Assembly (NCBI GenBank): GCA_037447605.1
Contig: CM074812.1
Location: 2,294,001 to 2,358,000, forward strand
Direction: 5' to 3'
Source: Zygnema circumcarinatum SAG 698-1b
Lineage: Eukaryota > Plantae > Zygnematophyceae
Length of the DNA stretch: 64,000 nucleotides
Of the stretch, positions 15,001 to 21,000 are shown piece by piece. A program made the translations under genes and the position numbers. The notes under the pieces were generated by a model. That model worked only from the letters and a program-made list of their open reading frames with translations, searched no databases and was not told the origin of the DNA. Positions within the stretch are counted from its first letter, which is position 1. Every line of letters starts with the position of its first letter.

Positions 15001-18000
15001 ATAAATGATTGCAGGCTGATTTTTCCATAGCTTCACGGGTTCTAACGAATGTTCTGTCTTTGCATGAAAGGATAACATTAGCGGAAGGTGGTAAAAATTG
15101 GACGCTCTAATCTTCCTCCCCCTCTGCTCTCCTCCTTCTCCCTCTCCCTCACCCTCTCCCTCTCCCTCTCCCTCTCTCTCACCCTCTCCCTCTCCCTCAC
15201 CCTCTCCCTCTCCCTCTCCCTCTCCCTCACCCTCTCCCTCTCCCTCCCTCTCCCTCGCCCTCTCCCTCTCCCTCTCCCTCGCCCTTTTCCTCTTCCTCTC
15301 CCTCTCCCTCTCCCTCGCCCTCTCCCTCTCCCTCGCCCTCTCCCTCTCCCTCCCTCTCTCCCTCCCTCCCTCCCCTGCAAACAATTTCTTCCTTCACATT
15401 TTGATGAATGACTGATGCATTCTCTTGCAGAGATTCTTCCCAAAACAAGGAAATATGGAATGTTCCCTTCAATGTTGGCGACTGTGTTTCTCTCGTTCAG
15501 CTGTAAGTGCGCTGCCTAAAAAAACCTCTCTTGATGTGAGCATCTATACACATTAGGTTTCAGGCTGCCCCAAACTCCGAAAGCGTGTGTCAATGGAAGG
15601 TCAGAAGAGCTTCATCTAATAGTGAAGAGAGAGAGGAGAGAGCGAGAGAGAGAGAGAGAGAGGAGAGGAAGAGGGGAGAGGGAAGAGCGGGAGAGGGGGA
15701 GAGGGGGAGAGGGGAAGAGGGGAGAGAGGGGAGAGAGGGGAGAGAGGGGNNNNNNNNNNGGAGAGGGGGGAGAGGGGGGAAGAGGGGAGAGAGGGGAGAG
15801 AGGGGAGAGAGGGGAGAGAGTGGATAGCGGGAGAAGGGGAGAGGGTTGACTGAGATACTGATGAAGCCATTTCTAAGGGCTGCGTTGTAATGGTTGCAGA
15901 TATCTATCCGGTAACAATCTGACTGGACCTATTCCGCAGGAGTTTCAGTCGCTCAGGCAGTTGCAAGTCTTGTATGTGCTTCAATTTTAACTTAAATTTT
16001 ATCTCGTACATATTTTAGACGTTTCTGTGCTGCGTATTCTGTGAACAGGTGGATTGAAATGAGAAGCTGATATACTCCATTGATGGCAAAAGCTGTACAA
16101 ATTCAACTTTTTGCTCCATCATGTTTTTGGTTTAGCTTCCTTTTCCTTGACATGTTCTATGTGTTCCATCACATGCAGAGACTTATCCAAGAATAGTTTC
16201 TTAGGGAGAATTCCATCAACTATTGGCAATTGTACTTCCCTCTTGTCGCTGTAAGCGTTTTTGCTCATATGTTTGCCCTCCTAATGAGAGGTCTCTCTCT
16301 CTTTCTTTCTCTCTCTCTCTCTCTCTCTCTCTCTCTCTCTCTTTCGCTCTCTCTCTCTTTCTCTCTCTCGCTCTCTCTCTTTCTCATATAATCAAAAGAG
16401 CGTGATCTCTCACCACTCGAGGAATTGCTGTAAATAATGTGCGGAACATCAATTTCATTTGTCTGCATACAGTCTCAAGCGCTCACTGAATTGAGGGTGA
16501 AGGTATCTACTCAATAGCCTATGCAGCAATTCCTTATTTGTTGCAGGGACTTGTCCGACAATCGATTGACTGGAGATATTCCCCCAGCTTTGTGGCAGCT
16601 CCCTAATCTGGCAACATTGTAAGTTTTTTTTTTTTTTTTTTTTTTTTTGCGAGTAGTGGAAATACAACGCAGTGAACCAAAACATGCTGCGTGTCTCTCG
16701 TCTATCTTTCTCTAAAATCATGAAAGAAAAAAAAAATGAAAAAAATAAATAAAACCATACGAAGAAATACTAAGTTATCAATCCCTCGAGACTCGAAAAA
16801 AACCTTCGCTCTGTTCTGCTCTGTACTAAAACCCTAATTTCTATTCTGACAGAAATTTGGCAAACAATTTCCTCACCGGCATCCTCAGAGCGCAAGTAGA
16901 TTCGGTTTTTTCTACCGTTACTTTTAACCTCAGCAGCAACTACTTGACTGGAAATCCCCTTTACATTTTACATGGAAGAAGCTCGTGTTTACCTATCACG
17001 AATAACTGCTTCAATCAAAGTGGAAACTGGAGCAATTCTTTATGCGAATATGGAATTCAGAGAAGCTCTGAAGATTGCCTTGCATTTTGCGATGCATCGC
17101 AAACAAGGGGTGCATGTGGAGGGCAAGGAATCTGCTCTATTTCCAACAAAAAGTGCATCTGTAGAGAGGGCTACAATGCAAAAAATGGGAGTACATGCAC
17201 CTTCCGTGAGTTCATGAACCCAAAGGAGAGACTCTGAAGTCAAAAGTTCTGGGAAGTTTTTGTGAAGCTTTACGGAAGAATTTGATAGTTACAATGGGTT
17301 TGCTTTTGAGATTTCCGTCAATAGTTGCTGAATTCAGACGAACTTGCTTACCTTAAACCCTTTAAACCCTAAAAACCCGAAAAACCCTAAAAACATATCG
17401 TAACTGTTCTGAAAACCTACTCTACTTCTGGTTGCCTTAGATTTCTCAAACACAATTTTTTTATTCTAATGCCTCGTGATAGTTCACTTTGCTTTGCTTT
17501 CAGCCTCCCTGCTCTCTCTCTGCTCTCAGTTTTCAGAGTTTTTCACTCTCCTGCCACATCCTCCCGTCCTCTCAGCTTGCCTCCCTCCCTCCCTTCCTCC
17601 TTCCCTCTCTCTCTCCCTCCCTCCCTCCCTCCCTCCCTCAAATGTTCTCAGCACTTCCCCTCTCAGTTGACTGACCCCCAGTTTGATTCACTTTTCAGAA
17701 AATTACGGATACGGACTGACTGCTCCACCCAAAGCCGTAAATGCGAGTCAGTATTTTCGCTATTTAAGTTCTGGTTACATTTCCTCAAAAAGTGGACTTC
17801 CTTCATGGTTGGTCGCCACCAGTTGGAATTGGGCACTGGAGGGAGCCGTACAAGGGGTCAAGAATCAAGGGAAATGCAGTACGAACTTTGCTTCCCAAAA
17901 ATGCCTTTAAGGACAGAAATTGCGTATAATGCACAGAAAAGGATATCAGATTCAGATTCAGATTCAGATTCAGATTCAGATTGAGAAAAGAAATGGAGCA

Positions 18001-21000
18001 ATACTTCAGTATGCGGCAGCATGTCATTACGCATATGAGCCTTAACTTACTACCACCGTGTGCTTACATAATTGACATAGCAACAACCAAACTGAATCAG
18101 AGGGCTTAATGTTCATATGGAATTTTCTGTCATTCCATATCGCTATATAGTATAGGTATGACGAAGTCTCAGAGAGAGAGAGAGAGAAAGAGAGTGAGAG
18201 AGACAGAGAGACAGAGAGAGAGAGAGACAGAGAGAGAAAGAGAGAGAGGATAACACAAAGACAACCTTGCACAAAAAGGAAAGTCTTAGTTACCCTGCAA
18301 CTTGACTATAAAGCCGTAAGAAAGAGAGTGTGTTGTGCACTCAGACATCATAGACGTTAGATGAAAGAAGTATCTCTGAAAACGTCCAATATGCTTTTTC
18401 CCCACAGATGAAGCTATTGCTACTGTCTATTTGAGTTGTACCTGTTCTATATAGAGTATTTATTCTCACCCAACAAACTTAGTTTAGTTCATGGAGCTTC
18501 CAAAATGTTCCTATTCAAATTCACCGTAAGTTGAAGGCGAGGGCAGTTGCAGTATCACAGATTCTCACTCTGTTTTTTTCGCACTTGCAGAGGCATCTTG
18601 GGTATATGCGGCCGTTTCTGCGATTGAAAGTGCTTATTACATATTTAACGGCGGACTGCAAGCACTTCCAAACATTTCTGAAGCACAAGTTTTGAATTGC
18701 ATTAATGGAAATCGCAATTGTAATACGTCGGGGTATCCAACGGAAGCATTTGACTTTGCAGTAACGGACGGCTTAGCCTTAAACTATGACGCATCACTGA
18801 ATTGTTCTTCAGAAAGTGTATGTCATTTCTCCTTATTTTCGTCTATTCTAAGGCCAGGTCTCTCTCTCTCTCTCTCTCTCTCTCTCTCTCTCTCTCTCTC
18901 TCTCTCTCTCTCTCTCTCTCTCTCTCTCTCTCTCTCTCTCTCTCTCTCTCTCTCTCTCTCTCTTTCTCTCTCTTTCTCTCTCTCTTTCTCTCTCTTTCTC
19001 TCTTTCTCTCTCGCTCTCTCTCTTTTTCTCTCTCTCTCTTTCTCTCTCTCTCTCTCTCTCTCTCCCTCTCTCTCTCTCTCTCTCTCTCTGTTTTCCCTGT
19101 TTCGCTTTGTCTTGTTCGCCCACCTCGTGGACCATTCTGCATTGCTTTCTGCATATCATTTCTCCCACTCCAACTCTTTCTTTTCTTCTCTGTTTCCTTT
19201 AGCAAGAGAGACACCTCTCTTGGTCGTTTTCTTCCTTTCTTTCGCCCCTTATTCGCGGTGCAAATTTCACCTAAACCCTAATCCTAAACCCTAATCCTAA
19301 ACCCTAATCTCTCTGTCTCTGTTACCACTCGCACATGCAGACGAGTGATAAGTTATACATTTCAACTTATGAACGACTTCGTTTGGACGGGTGGGTGGAC
19401 CTCCTATTGGCCGTACAACAGCAGCCGGTGGTAGTCACTATAGAAGCAACTGCAGCCAGTTTTCTCAACTACAACCCTAACGTGGTGAGCTTCATAAGAA
19501 AACAAGGGTTTTAAGAAAAAAGAGCCTTAAGAAAAAAGAGTTTTAAGAAAAGAGAGTTTTAAGAATAAAGAGTTTTAAGAAAAAAGAGTTTTAAGAAAAA
19601 AGAGTTTTAAGAAAAAAGAGTTTTAAGAAGAAAGAGTTTTAAGCTAAAAGAGTTTTAAGAAAAAAGAGTTTTTTTCCCGCAAACTTAGCCACATAGAGAC
19701 AGCAGCAGCAGCAGCATAAGTTTAGTTTTACATTATTAGATGTTTCGGTTAGTTTCCTAAAGGTACTCATTCTTGTTTTCGCAATGACTGACATGTAGAG
19801 ACGAGTACTTGTAAACTGAATAGATATCAGATGCAGATTTTTTATTCTTCCGTGTTTTTCAAATCCAAATCTAATTGATGTTGCTCATTTGTGCTGCCTG
19901 TTTTACGGTTTTTAGGGTTTCAGTTTTTCGATTTTTTATCAAAAATGTCCTCATCTTGATACTGTAATTCTGCTAAATCTTCTCTATGTTGGGGCAATGC
20001 AGGGTGTATATGACGATGAGTCATGTTTCTCAAATGGGTTGAACCATGCTGTGGTGATCGTCGGCTATGACTTAACCTTCACCCCCCCCTATTGGCTCAT
20101 TCGAAATTCGTGGGGAACAAATTGGGGAGATAGCGGATACATAAAAATAAAGATAACTTCCGGTTATGGAATTTGTGGCATCAACGTTCAACCAGCTTTG
20201 ATACCAATTTTGGAGTTCAAATGTAAGAGCATTTCCTCTGGCTAAAATATGTTCAAGGAAAAGCTAAAGGTTGAGATGAGTCGCTGGTGATACAATTTGA
20301 AATGGGGTTGCTATTCATATTATGCCAATTTCAGCTATCCTCTTCTTTTTTTCTCTTCCCCCATCCCCCATTCCTCTCTCCCTCTCACTCCATCCCTCCT
20401 CTGTTTTCTCTCTCATCAATCAGTTCTCCAGATGTATAGATGGCATACCTACTTCATTTTTACCTGCTTTCTTTCAAACAAATTACTTCGCCTATCTCGA
20501 GACTCACCCCCTGTACCTCTCCCTCATATTATCTTTTTGTCTTCCTCACCCTCCCCTTGTGCCTCTCCCTCTCCCTCTCCCTCTCCCTCTGACTCTCCCT
20601 CTGCCTCTCCCTCTGCCTCTCCCTCTCCCTCTCCCTCTCCCTCTCCCTCTCCCTCTCCCTCTCCCTCTCCCTCTCCTTCTCTTTCCATTTGTGATGCAGC
20701 TGACGACCCTTGCAATACCTATAACTACGCTAGAAAGTCTCTCTCTTTATCGTACGGTCCGGGCCGCATGAATCCCTGCGGTAACGGTCTCTGTATTCCT
20801 GTCGACCAAACAAAAAATTCGACAAACATGACCAATCTTTGCAGATGCAGCTCCGGCTTTGTGGCAGTAAACAGTACACGCACAACTCAGACATGTGCTC
20901 CTGGTAACAAAAAATTCACCTTCTCTTTTCACTCTACCAAAAAAAACATTAAACAAAAAAAAAAGGTTAAAAGGTTTTTTTTTAATTGTTTTTTTAACTT

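Follow-up and report, generated by a model that had tools for sequence, protein, structure and literature searches.

Ser replaces the catalytic Cys in the papain-type (C1A) domain of a gene from the zygnematophycean green alga Zygnema circumcarinatum SAG 698-1b, and this Ser-type domain is real and expressed. The gene lies in the 64,000-nucleotide stretch that we analyzed (contig CM074812.1, positions 2,294,001 to 2,358,000; hereafter the window), and in the algal protein family to which it belongs, Cys was exchanged for Ser on at least seven or eight separate occasions. We propose, with a probability of about 0.6, that the domain, which we call WIN_B, would be a kept, non-proteolytic module that binds peptides or other ligands within a mosaic protein; loss of proteolysis together with a binding role is the most likely interpretation of its sequence and its relatives.

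Results

The complete C1A domain is encoded on the + strand by four exons, which when joined give a stop-free reading frame of 256 residues. Exon 1 (17699..17878), covered exactly by contigs X15, X7, and X8, carries a family-specific N-terminal linker (..SQYFRYLSSGY..) and the first part of the mature domain; it ends in ..NWALEGAVQGVKNQGKC plus one base. Intron 1 (17879..18590), which contains (CAGATT)n and GA-rich repeats, interrupts a Lys codon (A|AG) directly before Ala-Ser-Trp. Exon 2 (18591..18817, + strand) was defined by RNA contigs, the DNA contig X4, and a PF00112 match, and reads K|ASWVYAAVSAIESAYY...NCINGNRNCNTSGYP...LNCSSES. Exon 3 (19341..19484, + strand), TSDKLYISTYERLRLDGWVDLLLAVQQQPVVVTIEATAASFLNYNPNV, is 50–64% identical to members of the algal family; its start was given by contig loose ends, and its end was placed by a GT donor and alignment. 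Exon 4 (20003..20222, + strand), GVYDDESCFSNGLNHAVVIVGY..YWLIRNSWGTNWGDSGY..GICGINVQPALIPILEFK, was recognized by PF00112 and by sequence matches in PDB, with limits taken from AG/GT sites and homologue alignment.

A first-pass annotation had assigned to this region a papain domain with a Ser-His-Asn triad, and that reading is confirmed. PF00112 matched exon 2 with 32.6 bits (E = 1.1e-7) and exon 4 with 68.7 bits (E = 1e-18), above the Pfam gathering score of 20.7 bits used as the cut-off. The nucleophile motif is QGKC|KASW, and the sequence is as originally read, with these codons: Gln19, CAA at 17866–17868; Cys22, TGC at 17875–17877; Ala, GCA at 18593–18595; Ser, TCT at 18596–18598; Trp, TGG at 18599–18601; His159, CAT at 20045–20047 (LNHAV); and Asn175, AAT at 20105–20107 (IRNSWG). 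The TCT-encoded Ser aligned with Cys25 of dionain-1 and with the catalytic Cys of bromelain; WIN_B is therefore a C1A homologue by fold, not a cysteine peptidase, and its earlier placement among Cys>Ser C1A proteins was right in kind. Cys25 was replaced through a one-base change, TGY to TCT. An alignment with 200 homologues showed that WIN_B retains Gln19, His159, Asn175, Trp26, and Trp177 (motifs NQGKC, LNHAV, and IRNSWG), all of the disulfide cysteines where aligned, and the NSWG..WG..GY core. The loop after the NCNTSGYP segment is shorter in WIN_B than in its relatives.

The joint between exons 1 and 2 (17878>18591, GT..AG, 712 bases skipped) was present in one transcript contig from each of X15, X7, and X8, which come from three studies, and across both exons these RNA contigs had no differing letters. 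The DNA run X4, from a fourth study, was identical over 18254–18850, including the TCT. This comparison spanned 17650–18850 and used assembled contigs rather than raw reads, so that a rare TGT allele would be hidden. For the joint between exons 2 and 3, the contig loose ends after 18817 were the 30 letters at 19341–19370, whereas that between exons 3 and 4 was placed purely from canonical GT/AG sites and homologue alignment. Intron 2 holds a long (CT)n tract at 18859–18963. The splice 17878 to 18591 had been assumed in the first-pass annotation, which had named beforehand two findings that would overturn it, a junction restoring C-G-S-C-W and a TGT codon. As the contigs contained a single joint and TCT, neither alternative was found, the junction being absent from the contigs of three studies and the codon being the same in three RNA assemblies and an independent DNA run. 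We therefore regard as negligible the chance that the apparent Ser is an artefact, whether of the splice model or of base calling: the four assemblies, three of RNA and one of DNA, each from a different study, agreed letter for letter, no alternative exon encoding ..CW occurred in any frame of intron 1 or elsewhere in the window, and nothing spoke for an artefact other than the ability of contigs to hide rare variants.

Single-exon Pfam matches and tblastn with the family proteins P0014, P0138, and P0149 gave the module order LRRNT/LRR, EGF, papain, EGF-EGF, LysM between 9572 and 24512. On this basis the window gene is predicted to encode a secreted-type LRR-EGF-papain-EGF-EGF-LysM mosaic protein, with the far-5′ exons a putative part of the transcript. 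The putative 5′ end of the gene is an LRRNT_2 exon (9572..9763, + strand; PF08263, E = 3.8e-5), from which cassettes of one LRR per exon run to about 16900. The X15 contig extends 1481 nt upstream of exon 1, and the contig loose ends before 17699 were 17176–17205, which in the genome is followed by GTGAGT. These loose ends, with alignment, defined an upstream exon (16857..17205, + strand, 5′ limit putative) that comprises the final LRR-like segment and an EGF-like module rich in Cys (..CGGQGICSISNKKCICREGYNAKNGSTCTF); EGF-type Pfam matches to it were weak (E = 0.014 and weaker), and it aligned with the corresponding module of P0138 and P0149. Because this EGF-like exon is spliced directly to exon 1, and because a Pfam search of exon 1 gave no match, there is no inhibitory propeptide of the I29 type; throughout the algal family a short YFR..S.G[FY] linker takes its place. 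Downstream of the papain domain, tblastn with the same three proteins located two EGF-like exons (20762..21393, + strand; about 20762–20902 and 21238–21393), the second of which matched PF00008 (E = 6.3e-5). C-terminal LysM-type exons extending to the stop codon (22195..24512, + strand; about 22195–22353, 23127–23234, 23571–23774, and 24261–24512) were placed by open reading frames and by tblastn alignments with the LysM portions of P0014 and P0149, the LysM profile PF01476 itself matching weakly (E = 0.033, 23592–23780).

A second copy, paralog A, lies on the minus strand near the start of the window. Its equivalent of exon 1 (234..425; ..NWNWVGEGTVQAVKNQESC, followed by a GT donor of matching phase) was found by tblastn (61% identity, E = 4.6e-24); its nucleophile exon is located beyond the window start, and its LRRNT exon is at 7097–6945, minus strand, so that paralog A and the window gene are arranged head to head.

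Two word searches of the protein collection yielded about 125 family members, and both Closterium and Mesotaenium have large complements of them. The members closest to WIN_B were about 40–57% identical per exon, and an exhaustive search of the proteins with exon 2 as query returned 13 matches, the best being a 139-aa Cys-type fragment with 50% identity. No orthologue of WIN_B was found in this collection, which seems not to include the organism's own proteins, and our literature search found no paper on an algal LRR-EGF-papain-EGF-LysM family. In a tree with cathepsin-L-type sequences and the RD21-like P0177 as outgroups, WIN_B grouped with the algal proteins, apart from the cathepsin-L-type sequences, and fell inside the family core clade (support 100/99) as sister to a 64-row Closterium clade (97/97). 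Its terminal branch was long, with 0.89 changes per column, which could reflect either relaxed constraint or species distance.

Whether homologues share the Ser had been raised as a check by the first-pass annotation, and the answer was divided: 29 of the 128 family domains have Ser, whereas 96 have Cys and 3 are other or uncertain. Among the Ser-type members are P0014 (Mesen1 ME000065S09001) and P0008, both with QLQCGASWAF. At least nine changes between the Cys and Ser states occurred on the tree, eight of them within the family, and Ser is found in eight separate family lineages. A single origin of all Ser rows was rejected (AU p = 2.25e-35); WIN_B and the Closterium 'CKASW' Ser clade may or may not share one origin, which the test did not reject (p-AU 0.0995). 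The replacement was nearly always Ser (eight lineages as against at most two doubtful others), a bias of about p = 0.001 under a crude model of equal single-base changes. His was retained in 27, and Asn and Trp177 in all, of the 29 Ser-type domains. Changes of Gln19 to Glu (6/29) and of Trp26 to Ser (9/29) were confined to Ser-type rows, as would be expected if catalytic constraint were relaxed there. When related pairs of Ser-type proteins were compared, identity in the papain domain and in its flanks was, for example, 85% versus 74%, 61% versus 49%, and 85% versus 71–76%. As the Ser-type domains in these family pairs are as conserved as the flanking modules, they are under purifying selection rather than in decay.

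Discussion

We propose that WIN_B would no longer cut peptide bonds at a useful rate, and that its folded cleft would bind a peptide or other ligand alongside the LRR, EGF, and LysM binding modules of the same protein. Its task could be to retain or protect a ligand that resembles a substrate or, alternatively, to sequester inhibitors directed at the Cys-type paralogs. The closest precedent is SERA5 of Plasmodium, whose Ser596 leaves it without protease activity, in which a Ser to Cys change creates activity, and whose Ser the parasite tolerates being changed to Ala (PMC4671257); though it is no enzyme, SERA5 is needed, and it retains a peptide-binding cleft (PMC4671257, PMC5500368, PMC7132891). 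Of the functions offered by the first-pass annotation, a pseudo-protease or binding module thus fits best, as WIN_B is expressed and spliced and keeps the cysteines of the fold; the suggestion of a silicatein-like mineralizing enzyme finds no support, given the algal clade and the missing I29 propeptide.

That WIN_B is instead an active hydrolase with a Ser-His-Asn triad, whether serine peptidase, esterase, or transacylase, resistant to oxidation and to thiol-directed inhibitors of the E-64 type, seems to us rather unlikely. It would account for the retention of His159, Asn175, Gln19, and Trp177 in WIN_B, for the near invariance of His and Asn over the 29 Ser-type domains, and for the choice in eight lineages of Ser, the only other common nucleophile. 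However, Cys25>Ser mutants of papain-type enzymes serve as inactive forms, and in several Ser-type lineages the oxyanion Gln has become Glu or Trp26 has been lost, which makes it less likely that catalysis is the shared function under selection. Moreover, activity of SERA5, which has the same triad, was undetectable (PMC4671257); His and Asn are retained in this non-enzymatic protein as well, so their retention does not discriminate. As WIN_B itself has lost none of Gln19, Trp26, His, and Asn, some residual or altered hydrolysis may nevertheless persist. Quite improbable, in our judgment, is the opposite extreme, that WIN_B is a functionless relic, a dead protease domain acting as a spacer while the LRR, EGF, and LysM modules do the work. 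The long end branch, the shortened loop, and the failure of the protein searches to find a close orthologue showing constraint on WIN_B are what a relic might present, but the frame is open across four exons with canonical splice sites that are used, no aligned disulfide cysteine and no part of the NSWG..WG..GY core has been lost, conservation of the Ser-type papain domains in the family equals or exceeds that of the flanking modules, and the replacing residue is not random.

We consider it very improbable that WIN_B condenses silica or another mineral precursor as a silicatein-like enzyme does. The two have the Ser-His-Asn arrangement in common, and the top PDB sequence match of exon 4 was silicatein alpha (6zq3); however, its margin over cathepsin K, 64.5 as against 59.5 bits, is trivial, and the best matches of exon 2 were the plant enzymes bromelain, dionain, and ervatamin. 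The LRR, EGF, and LysM context is one of ligand-binding modules, and membership of WIN_B among the silicateins was rejected, as it branches in the algal family rather than with animal cathepsin L and has no I29 propeptide. Even for silicatein's own activity, the need for the triad is disputed (PMC11740617).

A bolder reading is that Ser-type and Cys-type members may act as pairs, in which a non-cutting bait would bind the microbial ligand or protease inhibitor of its active partner. Such pairs would amount to an algal precursor of the apoplastic guard or decoy logic of land plants, one that a single recurring base change would have created independently at least seven times. The idea starts from the head-to-head position of the Ser-type gene and paralog A in the window, and we regard it as a long shot.

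Papain-fold proteins with Ser for Cys are otherwise known from a few scattered examples, namely silicatein, SERA, and testin. Here the swap recurs within a single extensive family of secreted LRR/LysM mosaics, so far unstudied, from the algae closest to land plants, and so offers a natural replicate series for asking why a protease fold persists after cutting stops. It also bears on the question of whether protease scaffolds were turned into extracellular modules for sensing and binding before land-plant immunity arose. Practical value is modest, pending bench work on one member.

Among known systems, SERA5 resembles WIN_B in its papain fold, in having Ser at the Cys25 position, and in keeping His and Asn, and the SERA proteins, like the algal ones, form a multigene family that mixes Cys-type and Ser-type members. 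The serine-type SERAs are, however, monophyletic (Group IV; PMC7132891), whereas Ser occurs in eight separate lineages of the algal family; they are proteins of a parasite rather than an alga, and the algal domain sits in an LRR, EGF, and LysM context. From its placement in the algal clade we infer that WIN_B lies outside the serine-type SERAs and is related to them only at the level of the C1A fold, so that the likeness is one of probable working, not of descent. Silicatein alpha of sponges (PDB 6zq3) also carries Ser-His-Asn on a cathepsin-L-like fold, but derives from animal cathepsin L, has a propeptide, and builds silica filaments, whereas WIN_B is flanked by binding modules. Land-plant apoplastic papain-like proteases are targets of pathogen inhibitors, and those of the RD21, Rcr3, and Pip1 type are, like WIN_B, secreted C1A domains of the green lineage; they differ in keeping Cys25, in having an I29 propeptide (some with a granulin tail as well), and in having no LRR, EGF, or LysM fusion. 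The predicted mosaic proteins of Closterium and Mesotaenium share with WIN_B the module order, the YFR..S.G[FY] linker in place of the propeptide, and the clade itself, but three quarters of them keep Cys, and WIN_B stands alone on its long branch.

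The splice joint and the serine codon

The papain-type (C1A) domain of the window's gene comprised 256 residues and was encoded, without a stop codon, by four plus-strand exons (17699-17878, 18591-18817, 19341-19484, and 20003-20222) in a eukaryotic genome rich in introns and microsatellites. Exon 1 ended in ...NWALEGAVQGVKNQGKC plus one base, and exon 2 opened with the two remaining bases of the Lys codon followed by GCA TCT TGG (Ala-Ser-Trp); the nucleophile site therefore read QGKCKASW, as against QGxCGSCW in active papains. The first-pass annotation had proposed a papain domain with a Ser-His-Asn triad, and this was borne out: its members were Ser (codon TCT, 18596-18598), His in LNHAV (20045-20047), and Asn in IRNSWG (20105-20107), and exons 2 and 4 matched Pfam PF00112 (E = 1.1e-7 and 1e-18, both beyond the cut-off). 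Against solved structures, phmmer aligned the Ser with Cys25 in dionain-1 and, in fruit bromelain, with the catalytic Cys. The alignment showed that Gln19 and Trp26 were retained, together with disulfide cysteines corresponding to Cys22, 56, 63, 95, 153, and 200. Compared with its relatives, the domain had Lys at position 23, NCNTSGYP where a C-x-G-G-W/Y segment is usual, and a shortened loop thereafter; the NCNTSGYP change introduced an N-T-S sequon bordering the substrate cleft.

The serine would be lost if another splice junction restored C-G-S-C-W or if the codon were TGT, and we compared contigs from four runs with positions 17650-18850. Three transcript runs from three studies (X15, X7, and X8) each yielded one contig covering 17699-17878 and 18591-18817, joining exon 1 to exon 2 with 712 bases skipped between GT..AG ends; over 17650-18850 these contigs contained neither a differing letter nor a second joint. 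The DNA contig from a fourth study (X4) covered 18254-18850 and was identical to the window. Because these contigs agreed, with the 17878>18591 joint and TCT in RNA and TCT in DNA, both outcomes were excluded to the extent that contigs allow, and the serine codon and the assumed splice stand. No alternative exon encoding ..CW was present in intron 1 or in the rest of the window. The 5' loose ends of the contigs matched 17176-17205, followed by GTGAGT, and the 3' loose ends matched 19341-19370, directly preceded by CAG; the neighboring exon joints were thus also fixed. The exon 3-exon 4 joint was placed from canonical sites and alignment, and intron 2 contained a long (CT)n.

The introns carried simple repeats (18859-19090, 19500-19670, 19270-19310, and 9300-9560), including a (CT)n of roughly 230 bp, a tandem array of a roughly 17-bp GAGTTTTAAGAAAAAA-like unit, and interspersed telomere-like CCCTAAA/CCTAAA runs. 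Elsewhere in the window, the hexamer TCTCCC was repeated in an array over 6.8 kb (47863-54705; about 1159 copies, 80% matches), which made the plus strand almost entirely pyrimidine over 48-54 kb (GC skew about -0.97, AT skew about -0.96).

Gene organization and relatives

A Cys-rich, EGF-like exon ending at 17205 was spliced straight onto papain exon 1. Downstream of the papain domain lay two EGF-like exons, several LysM-type exons, and a stop at 24512, and on the 5' side was an LRRNT_2 exon (9572-9763, plus strand), giving the layout LRR-EGF-papain-EGF-EGF-LysM. By Pfam on the exons and from the directly joined EGF-like exon, no I29 propeptide was found in this gene; in the alignment its place was taken throughout the algal family by a short conserved linker, YFR[HY].S.G[FY], connecting the EGF module to the mature papain domain (17699-17800 in the window). 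A second family gene, paralog A, spanned 234-7097 on the minus strand, head to head with the Ser-type gene (9572-24512, plus strand). Its equivalent of exon 1 (425-234) was 61% identical and ended in ..VKNQESC, followed by a GT donor of matching phase; the exon for its nucleophile falls outside the window. Since its LRRNT exon (7097-6945) lay ~2.5 kb from that of the Ser-type gene, the two genes may share a divergent promoter region.

An exhaustive protein search with exon 2 gave 13 matches, none of them an orthologue; the top match, a Cys-type fragment, came from an unrelated run, and another, Mesotaenium endlicherianum ME000065S09004 (P0008), was likewise Ser-type. Starting from P0008 and the neighboring P0014, word searches yielded about 125 family members from Mesotaenium and eight strains of the Closterium peracerosum-strigosum-littorale complex, the closest of which were about 40-57% identical to the window exons. 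At that distance, the source of the window is a zygnematophycean alga other than these.

Repeated origin of the serine

We aligned 199 homologous domains with that of the window. Among the 128 rows of the algal family, the nucleophile was Ser in 29, Cys in 96, and another residue or a gap in 3. An IQ-TREE phylogeny built from a thinned set of 103 rows (271 columns, nucleophile columns excluded) recovered the family core clade with support of 100/99 and placed Ser-type rows at eight separate places: two in Mesotaenium, a Closterium clade of eight, clades of six and of four, a pair, a single row beside a Cys-type sister, and the window's gene. At least nine state changes were needed on the tree, one of them in an outgroup row, a tick cathepsin L. 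When all 25 Ser rows were constrained to be monophyletic, the log-likelihood fell by 599 units (p-AU 2.25e-35), and a single origin was rejected. The window's domain was sister to a 64-row Closterium clade (support 97/97) on a long end branch (0.89). A grouping of the window's gene with the Closterium clade that has the same C-K-A-S-W motif was not rejected (p-AU 0.0995), so its serine could have arisen independently or could be old. Serine at the nucleophile position also occurred in two unrelated animal cathepsin-L homologues among the search hits, P0045 (Haemaphysalis flava 'cathepsin L', QGQCGASWAF) and P0009 (a vertebrate-like tandem cathepsin, CQSSWAF), showing how frequent the swap is in C1A.

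Function of the serine-type domain

Cys25 was replaced by Ser in 8 lineages, as against at most two doubtful cases of other residues, a preference of about p = 0.001 under a crude model of equal single-base changes of TGY (Ser in 2/7 outcomes). The Ser-type rows kept His in 27 of 29 and Asn, Ser176, and Trp177 in all 29. A domain so equipped might be an active serine hydrolase, a reading that we consider unlikely. Gln19>Glu (6/29) and Trp26>Ser (9/29) were confined to Ser-type rows, which fits relaxed catalytic constraint. In one Closterium Ser-type clade, which bears legume-lectin domains (P0191, P0176, P0179, P0188, P0195, P0196, P0199, P0200, and P0181), both Cys25 and Trp26 were changed (QHGCADSSAYAVV); in another Ser-type clade (P0026-P0029, P0133, and P0152) the oxyanion Gln had become Glu (EGxCKASWAI). 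Judged from their residues, both clades bear stronger pseudo-enzyme signatures than the window's gene. A neutral relic is improbable, and less likely than a binding module: comparison of related pairs showed Ser-type papain domains to be no less conserved than their flanks (85% versus 74%; 61% versus 49%; 85% versus 71-76%; 84% versus 87% and 58%), and Cys-type pairs behaved alike.

The first-pass annotation had offered a pseudo-protease that traps ligands or inhibitors, or a neofunctionalised hydrolase or mineralising enzyme. The case for a silicatein-like enzyme consists of the shared Ser-His-Asn triad and a trivial 5-bit lead in the PDB ranking of one exon; this reading is contradicted by the phylogeny, the missing propeptide, and the domain context, and the need for the triad is disputed even in silicatein itself (PMC11740617). 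The binding reading was favored by the family conservation data and by analogy with SERA5, the best-studied analogue, which has Ser at the same position. SERA5 lacks protease activity, becomes a cysteine protease upon Ser->Cys substitution, and tolerates Ser>Ala in the parasite, though SERA5 itself is needed (PMC4671257, PMC5500368). We propose, with a probability of roughly 0.6, that the window's domain is a folded, selected, non-cutting binding cleft; the papain fold would have been kept in this form beside the other binding modules.

Papain homologues with Cys>Ser are already known; our literature search found no papers on the algal LRR-EGF-papain-EGF-LysM mosaic family. The serine-type members of SERA form a single group (PMC7132891), whereas in the algal family the serine arose repeatedly and convergently.
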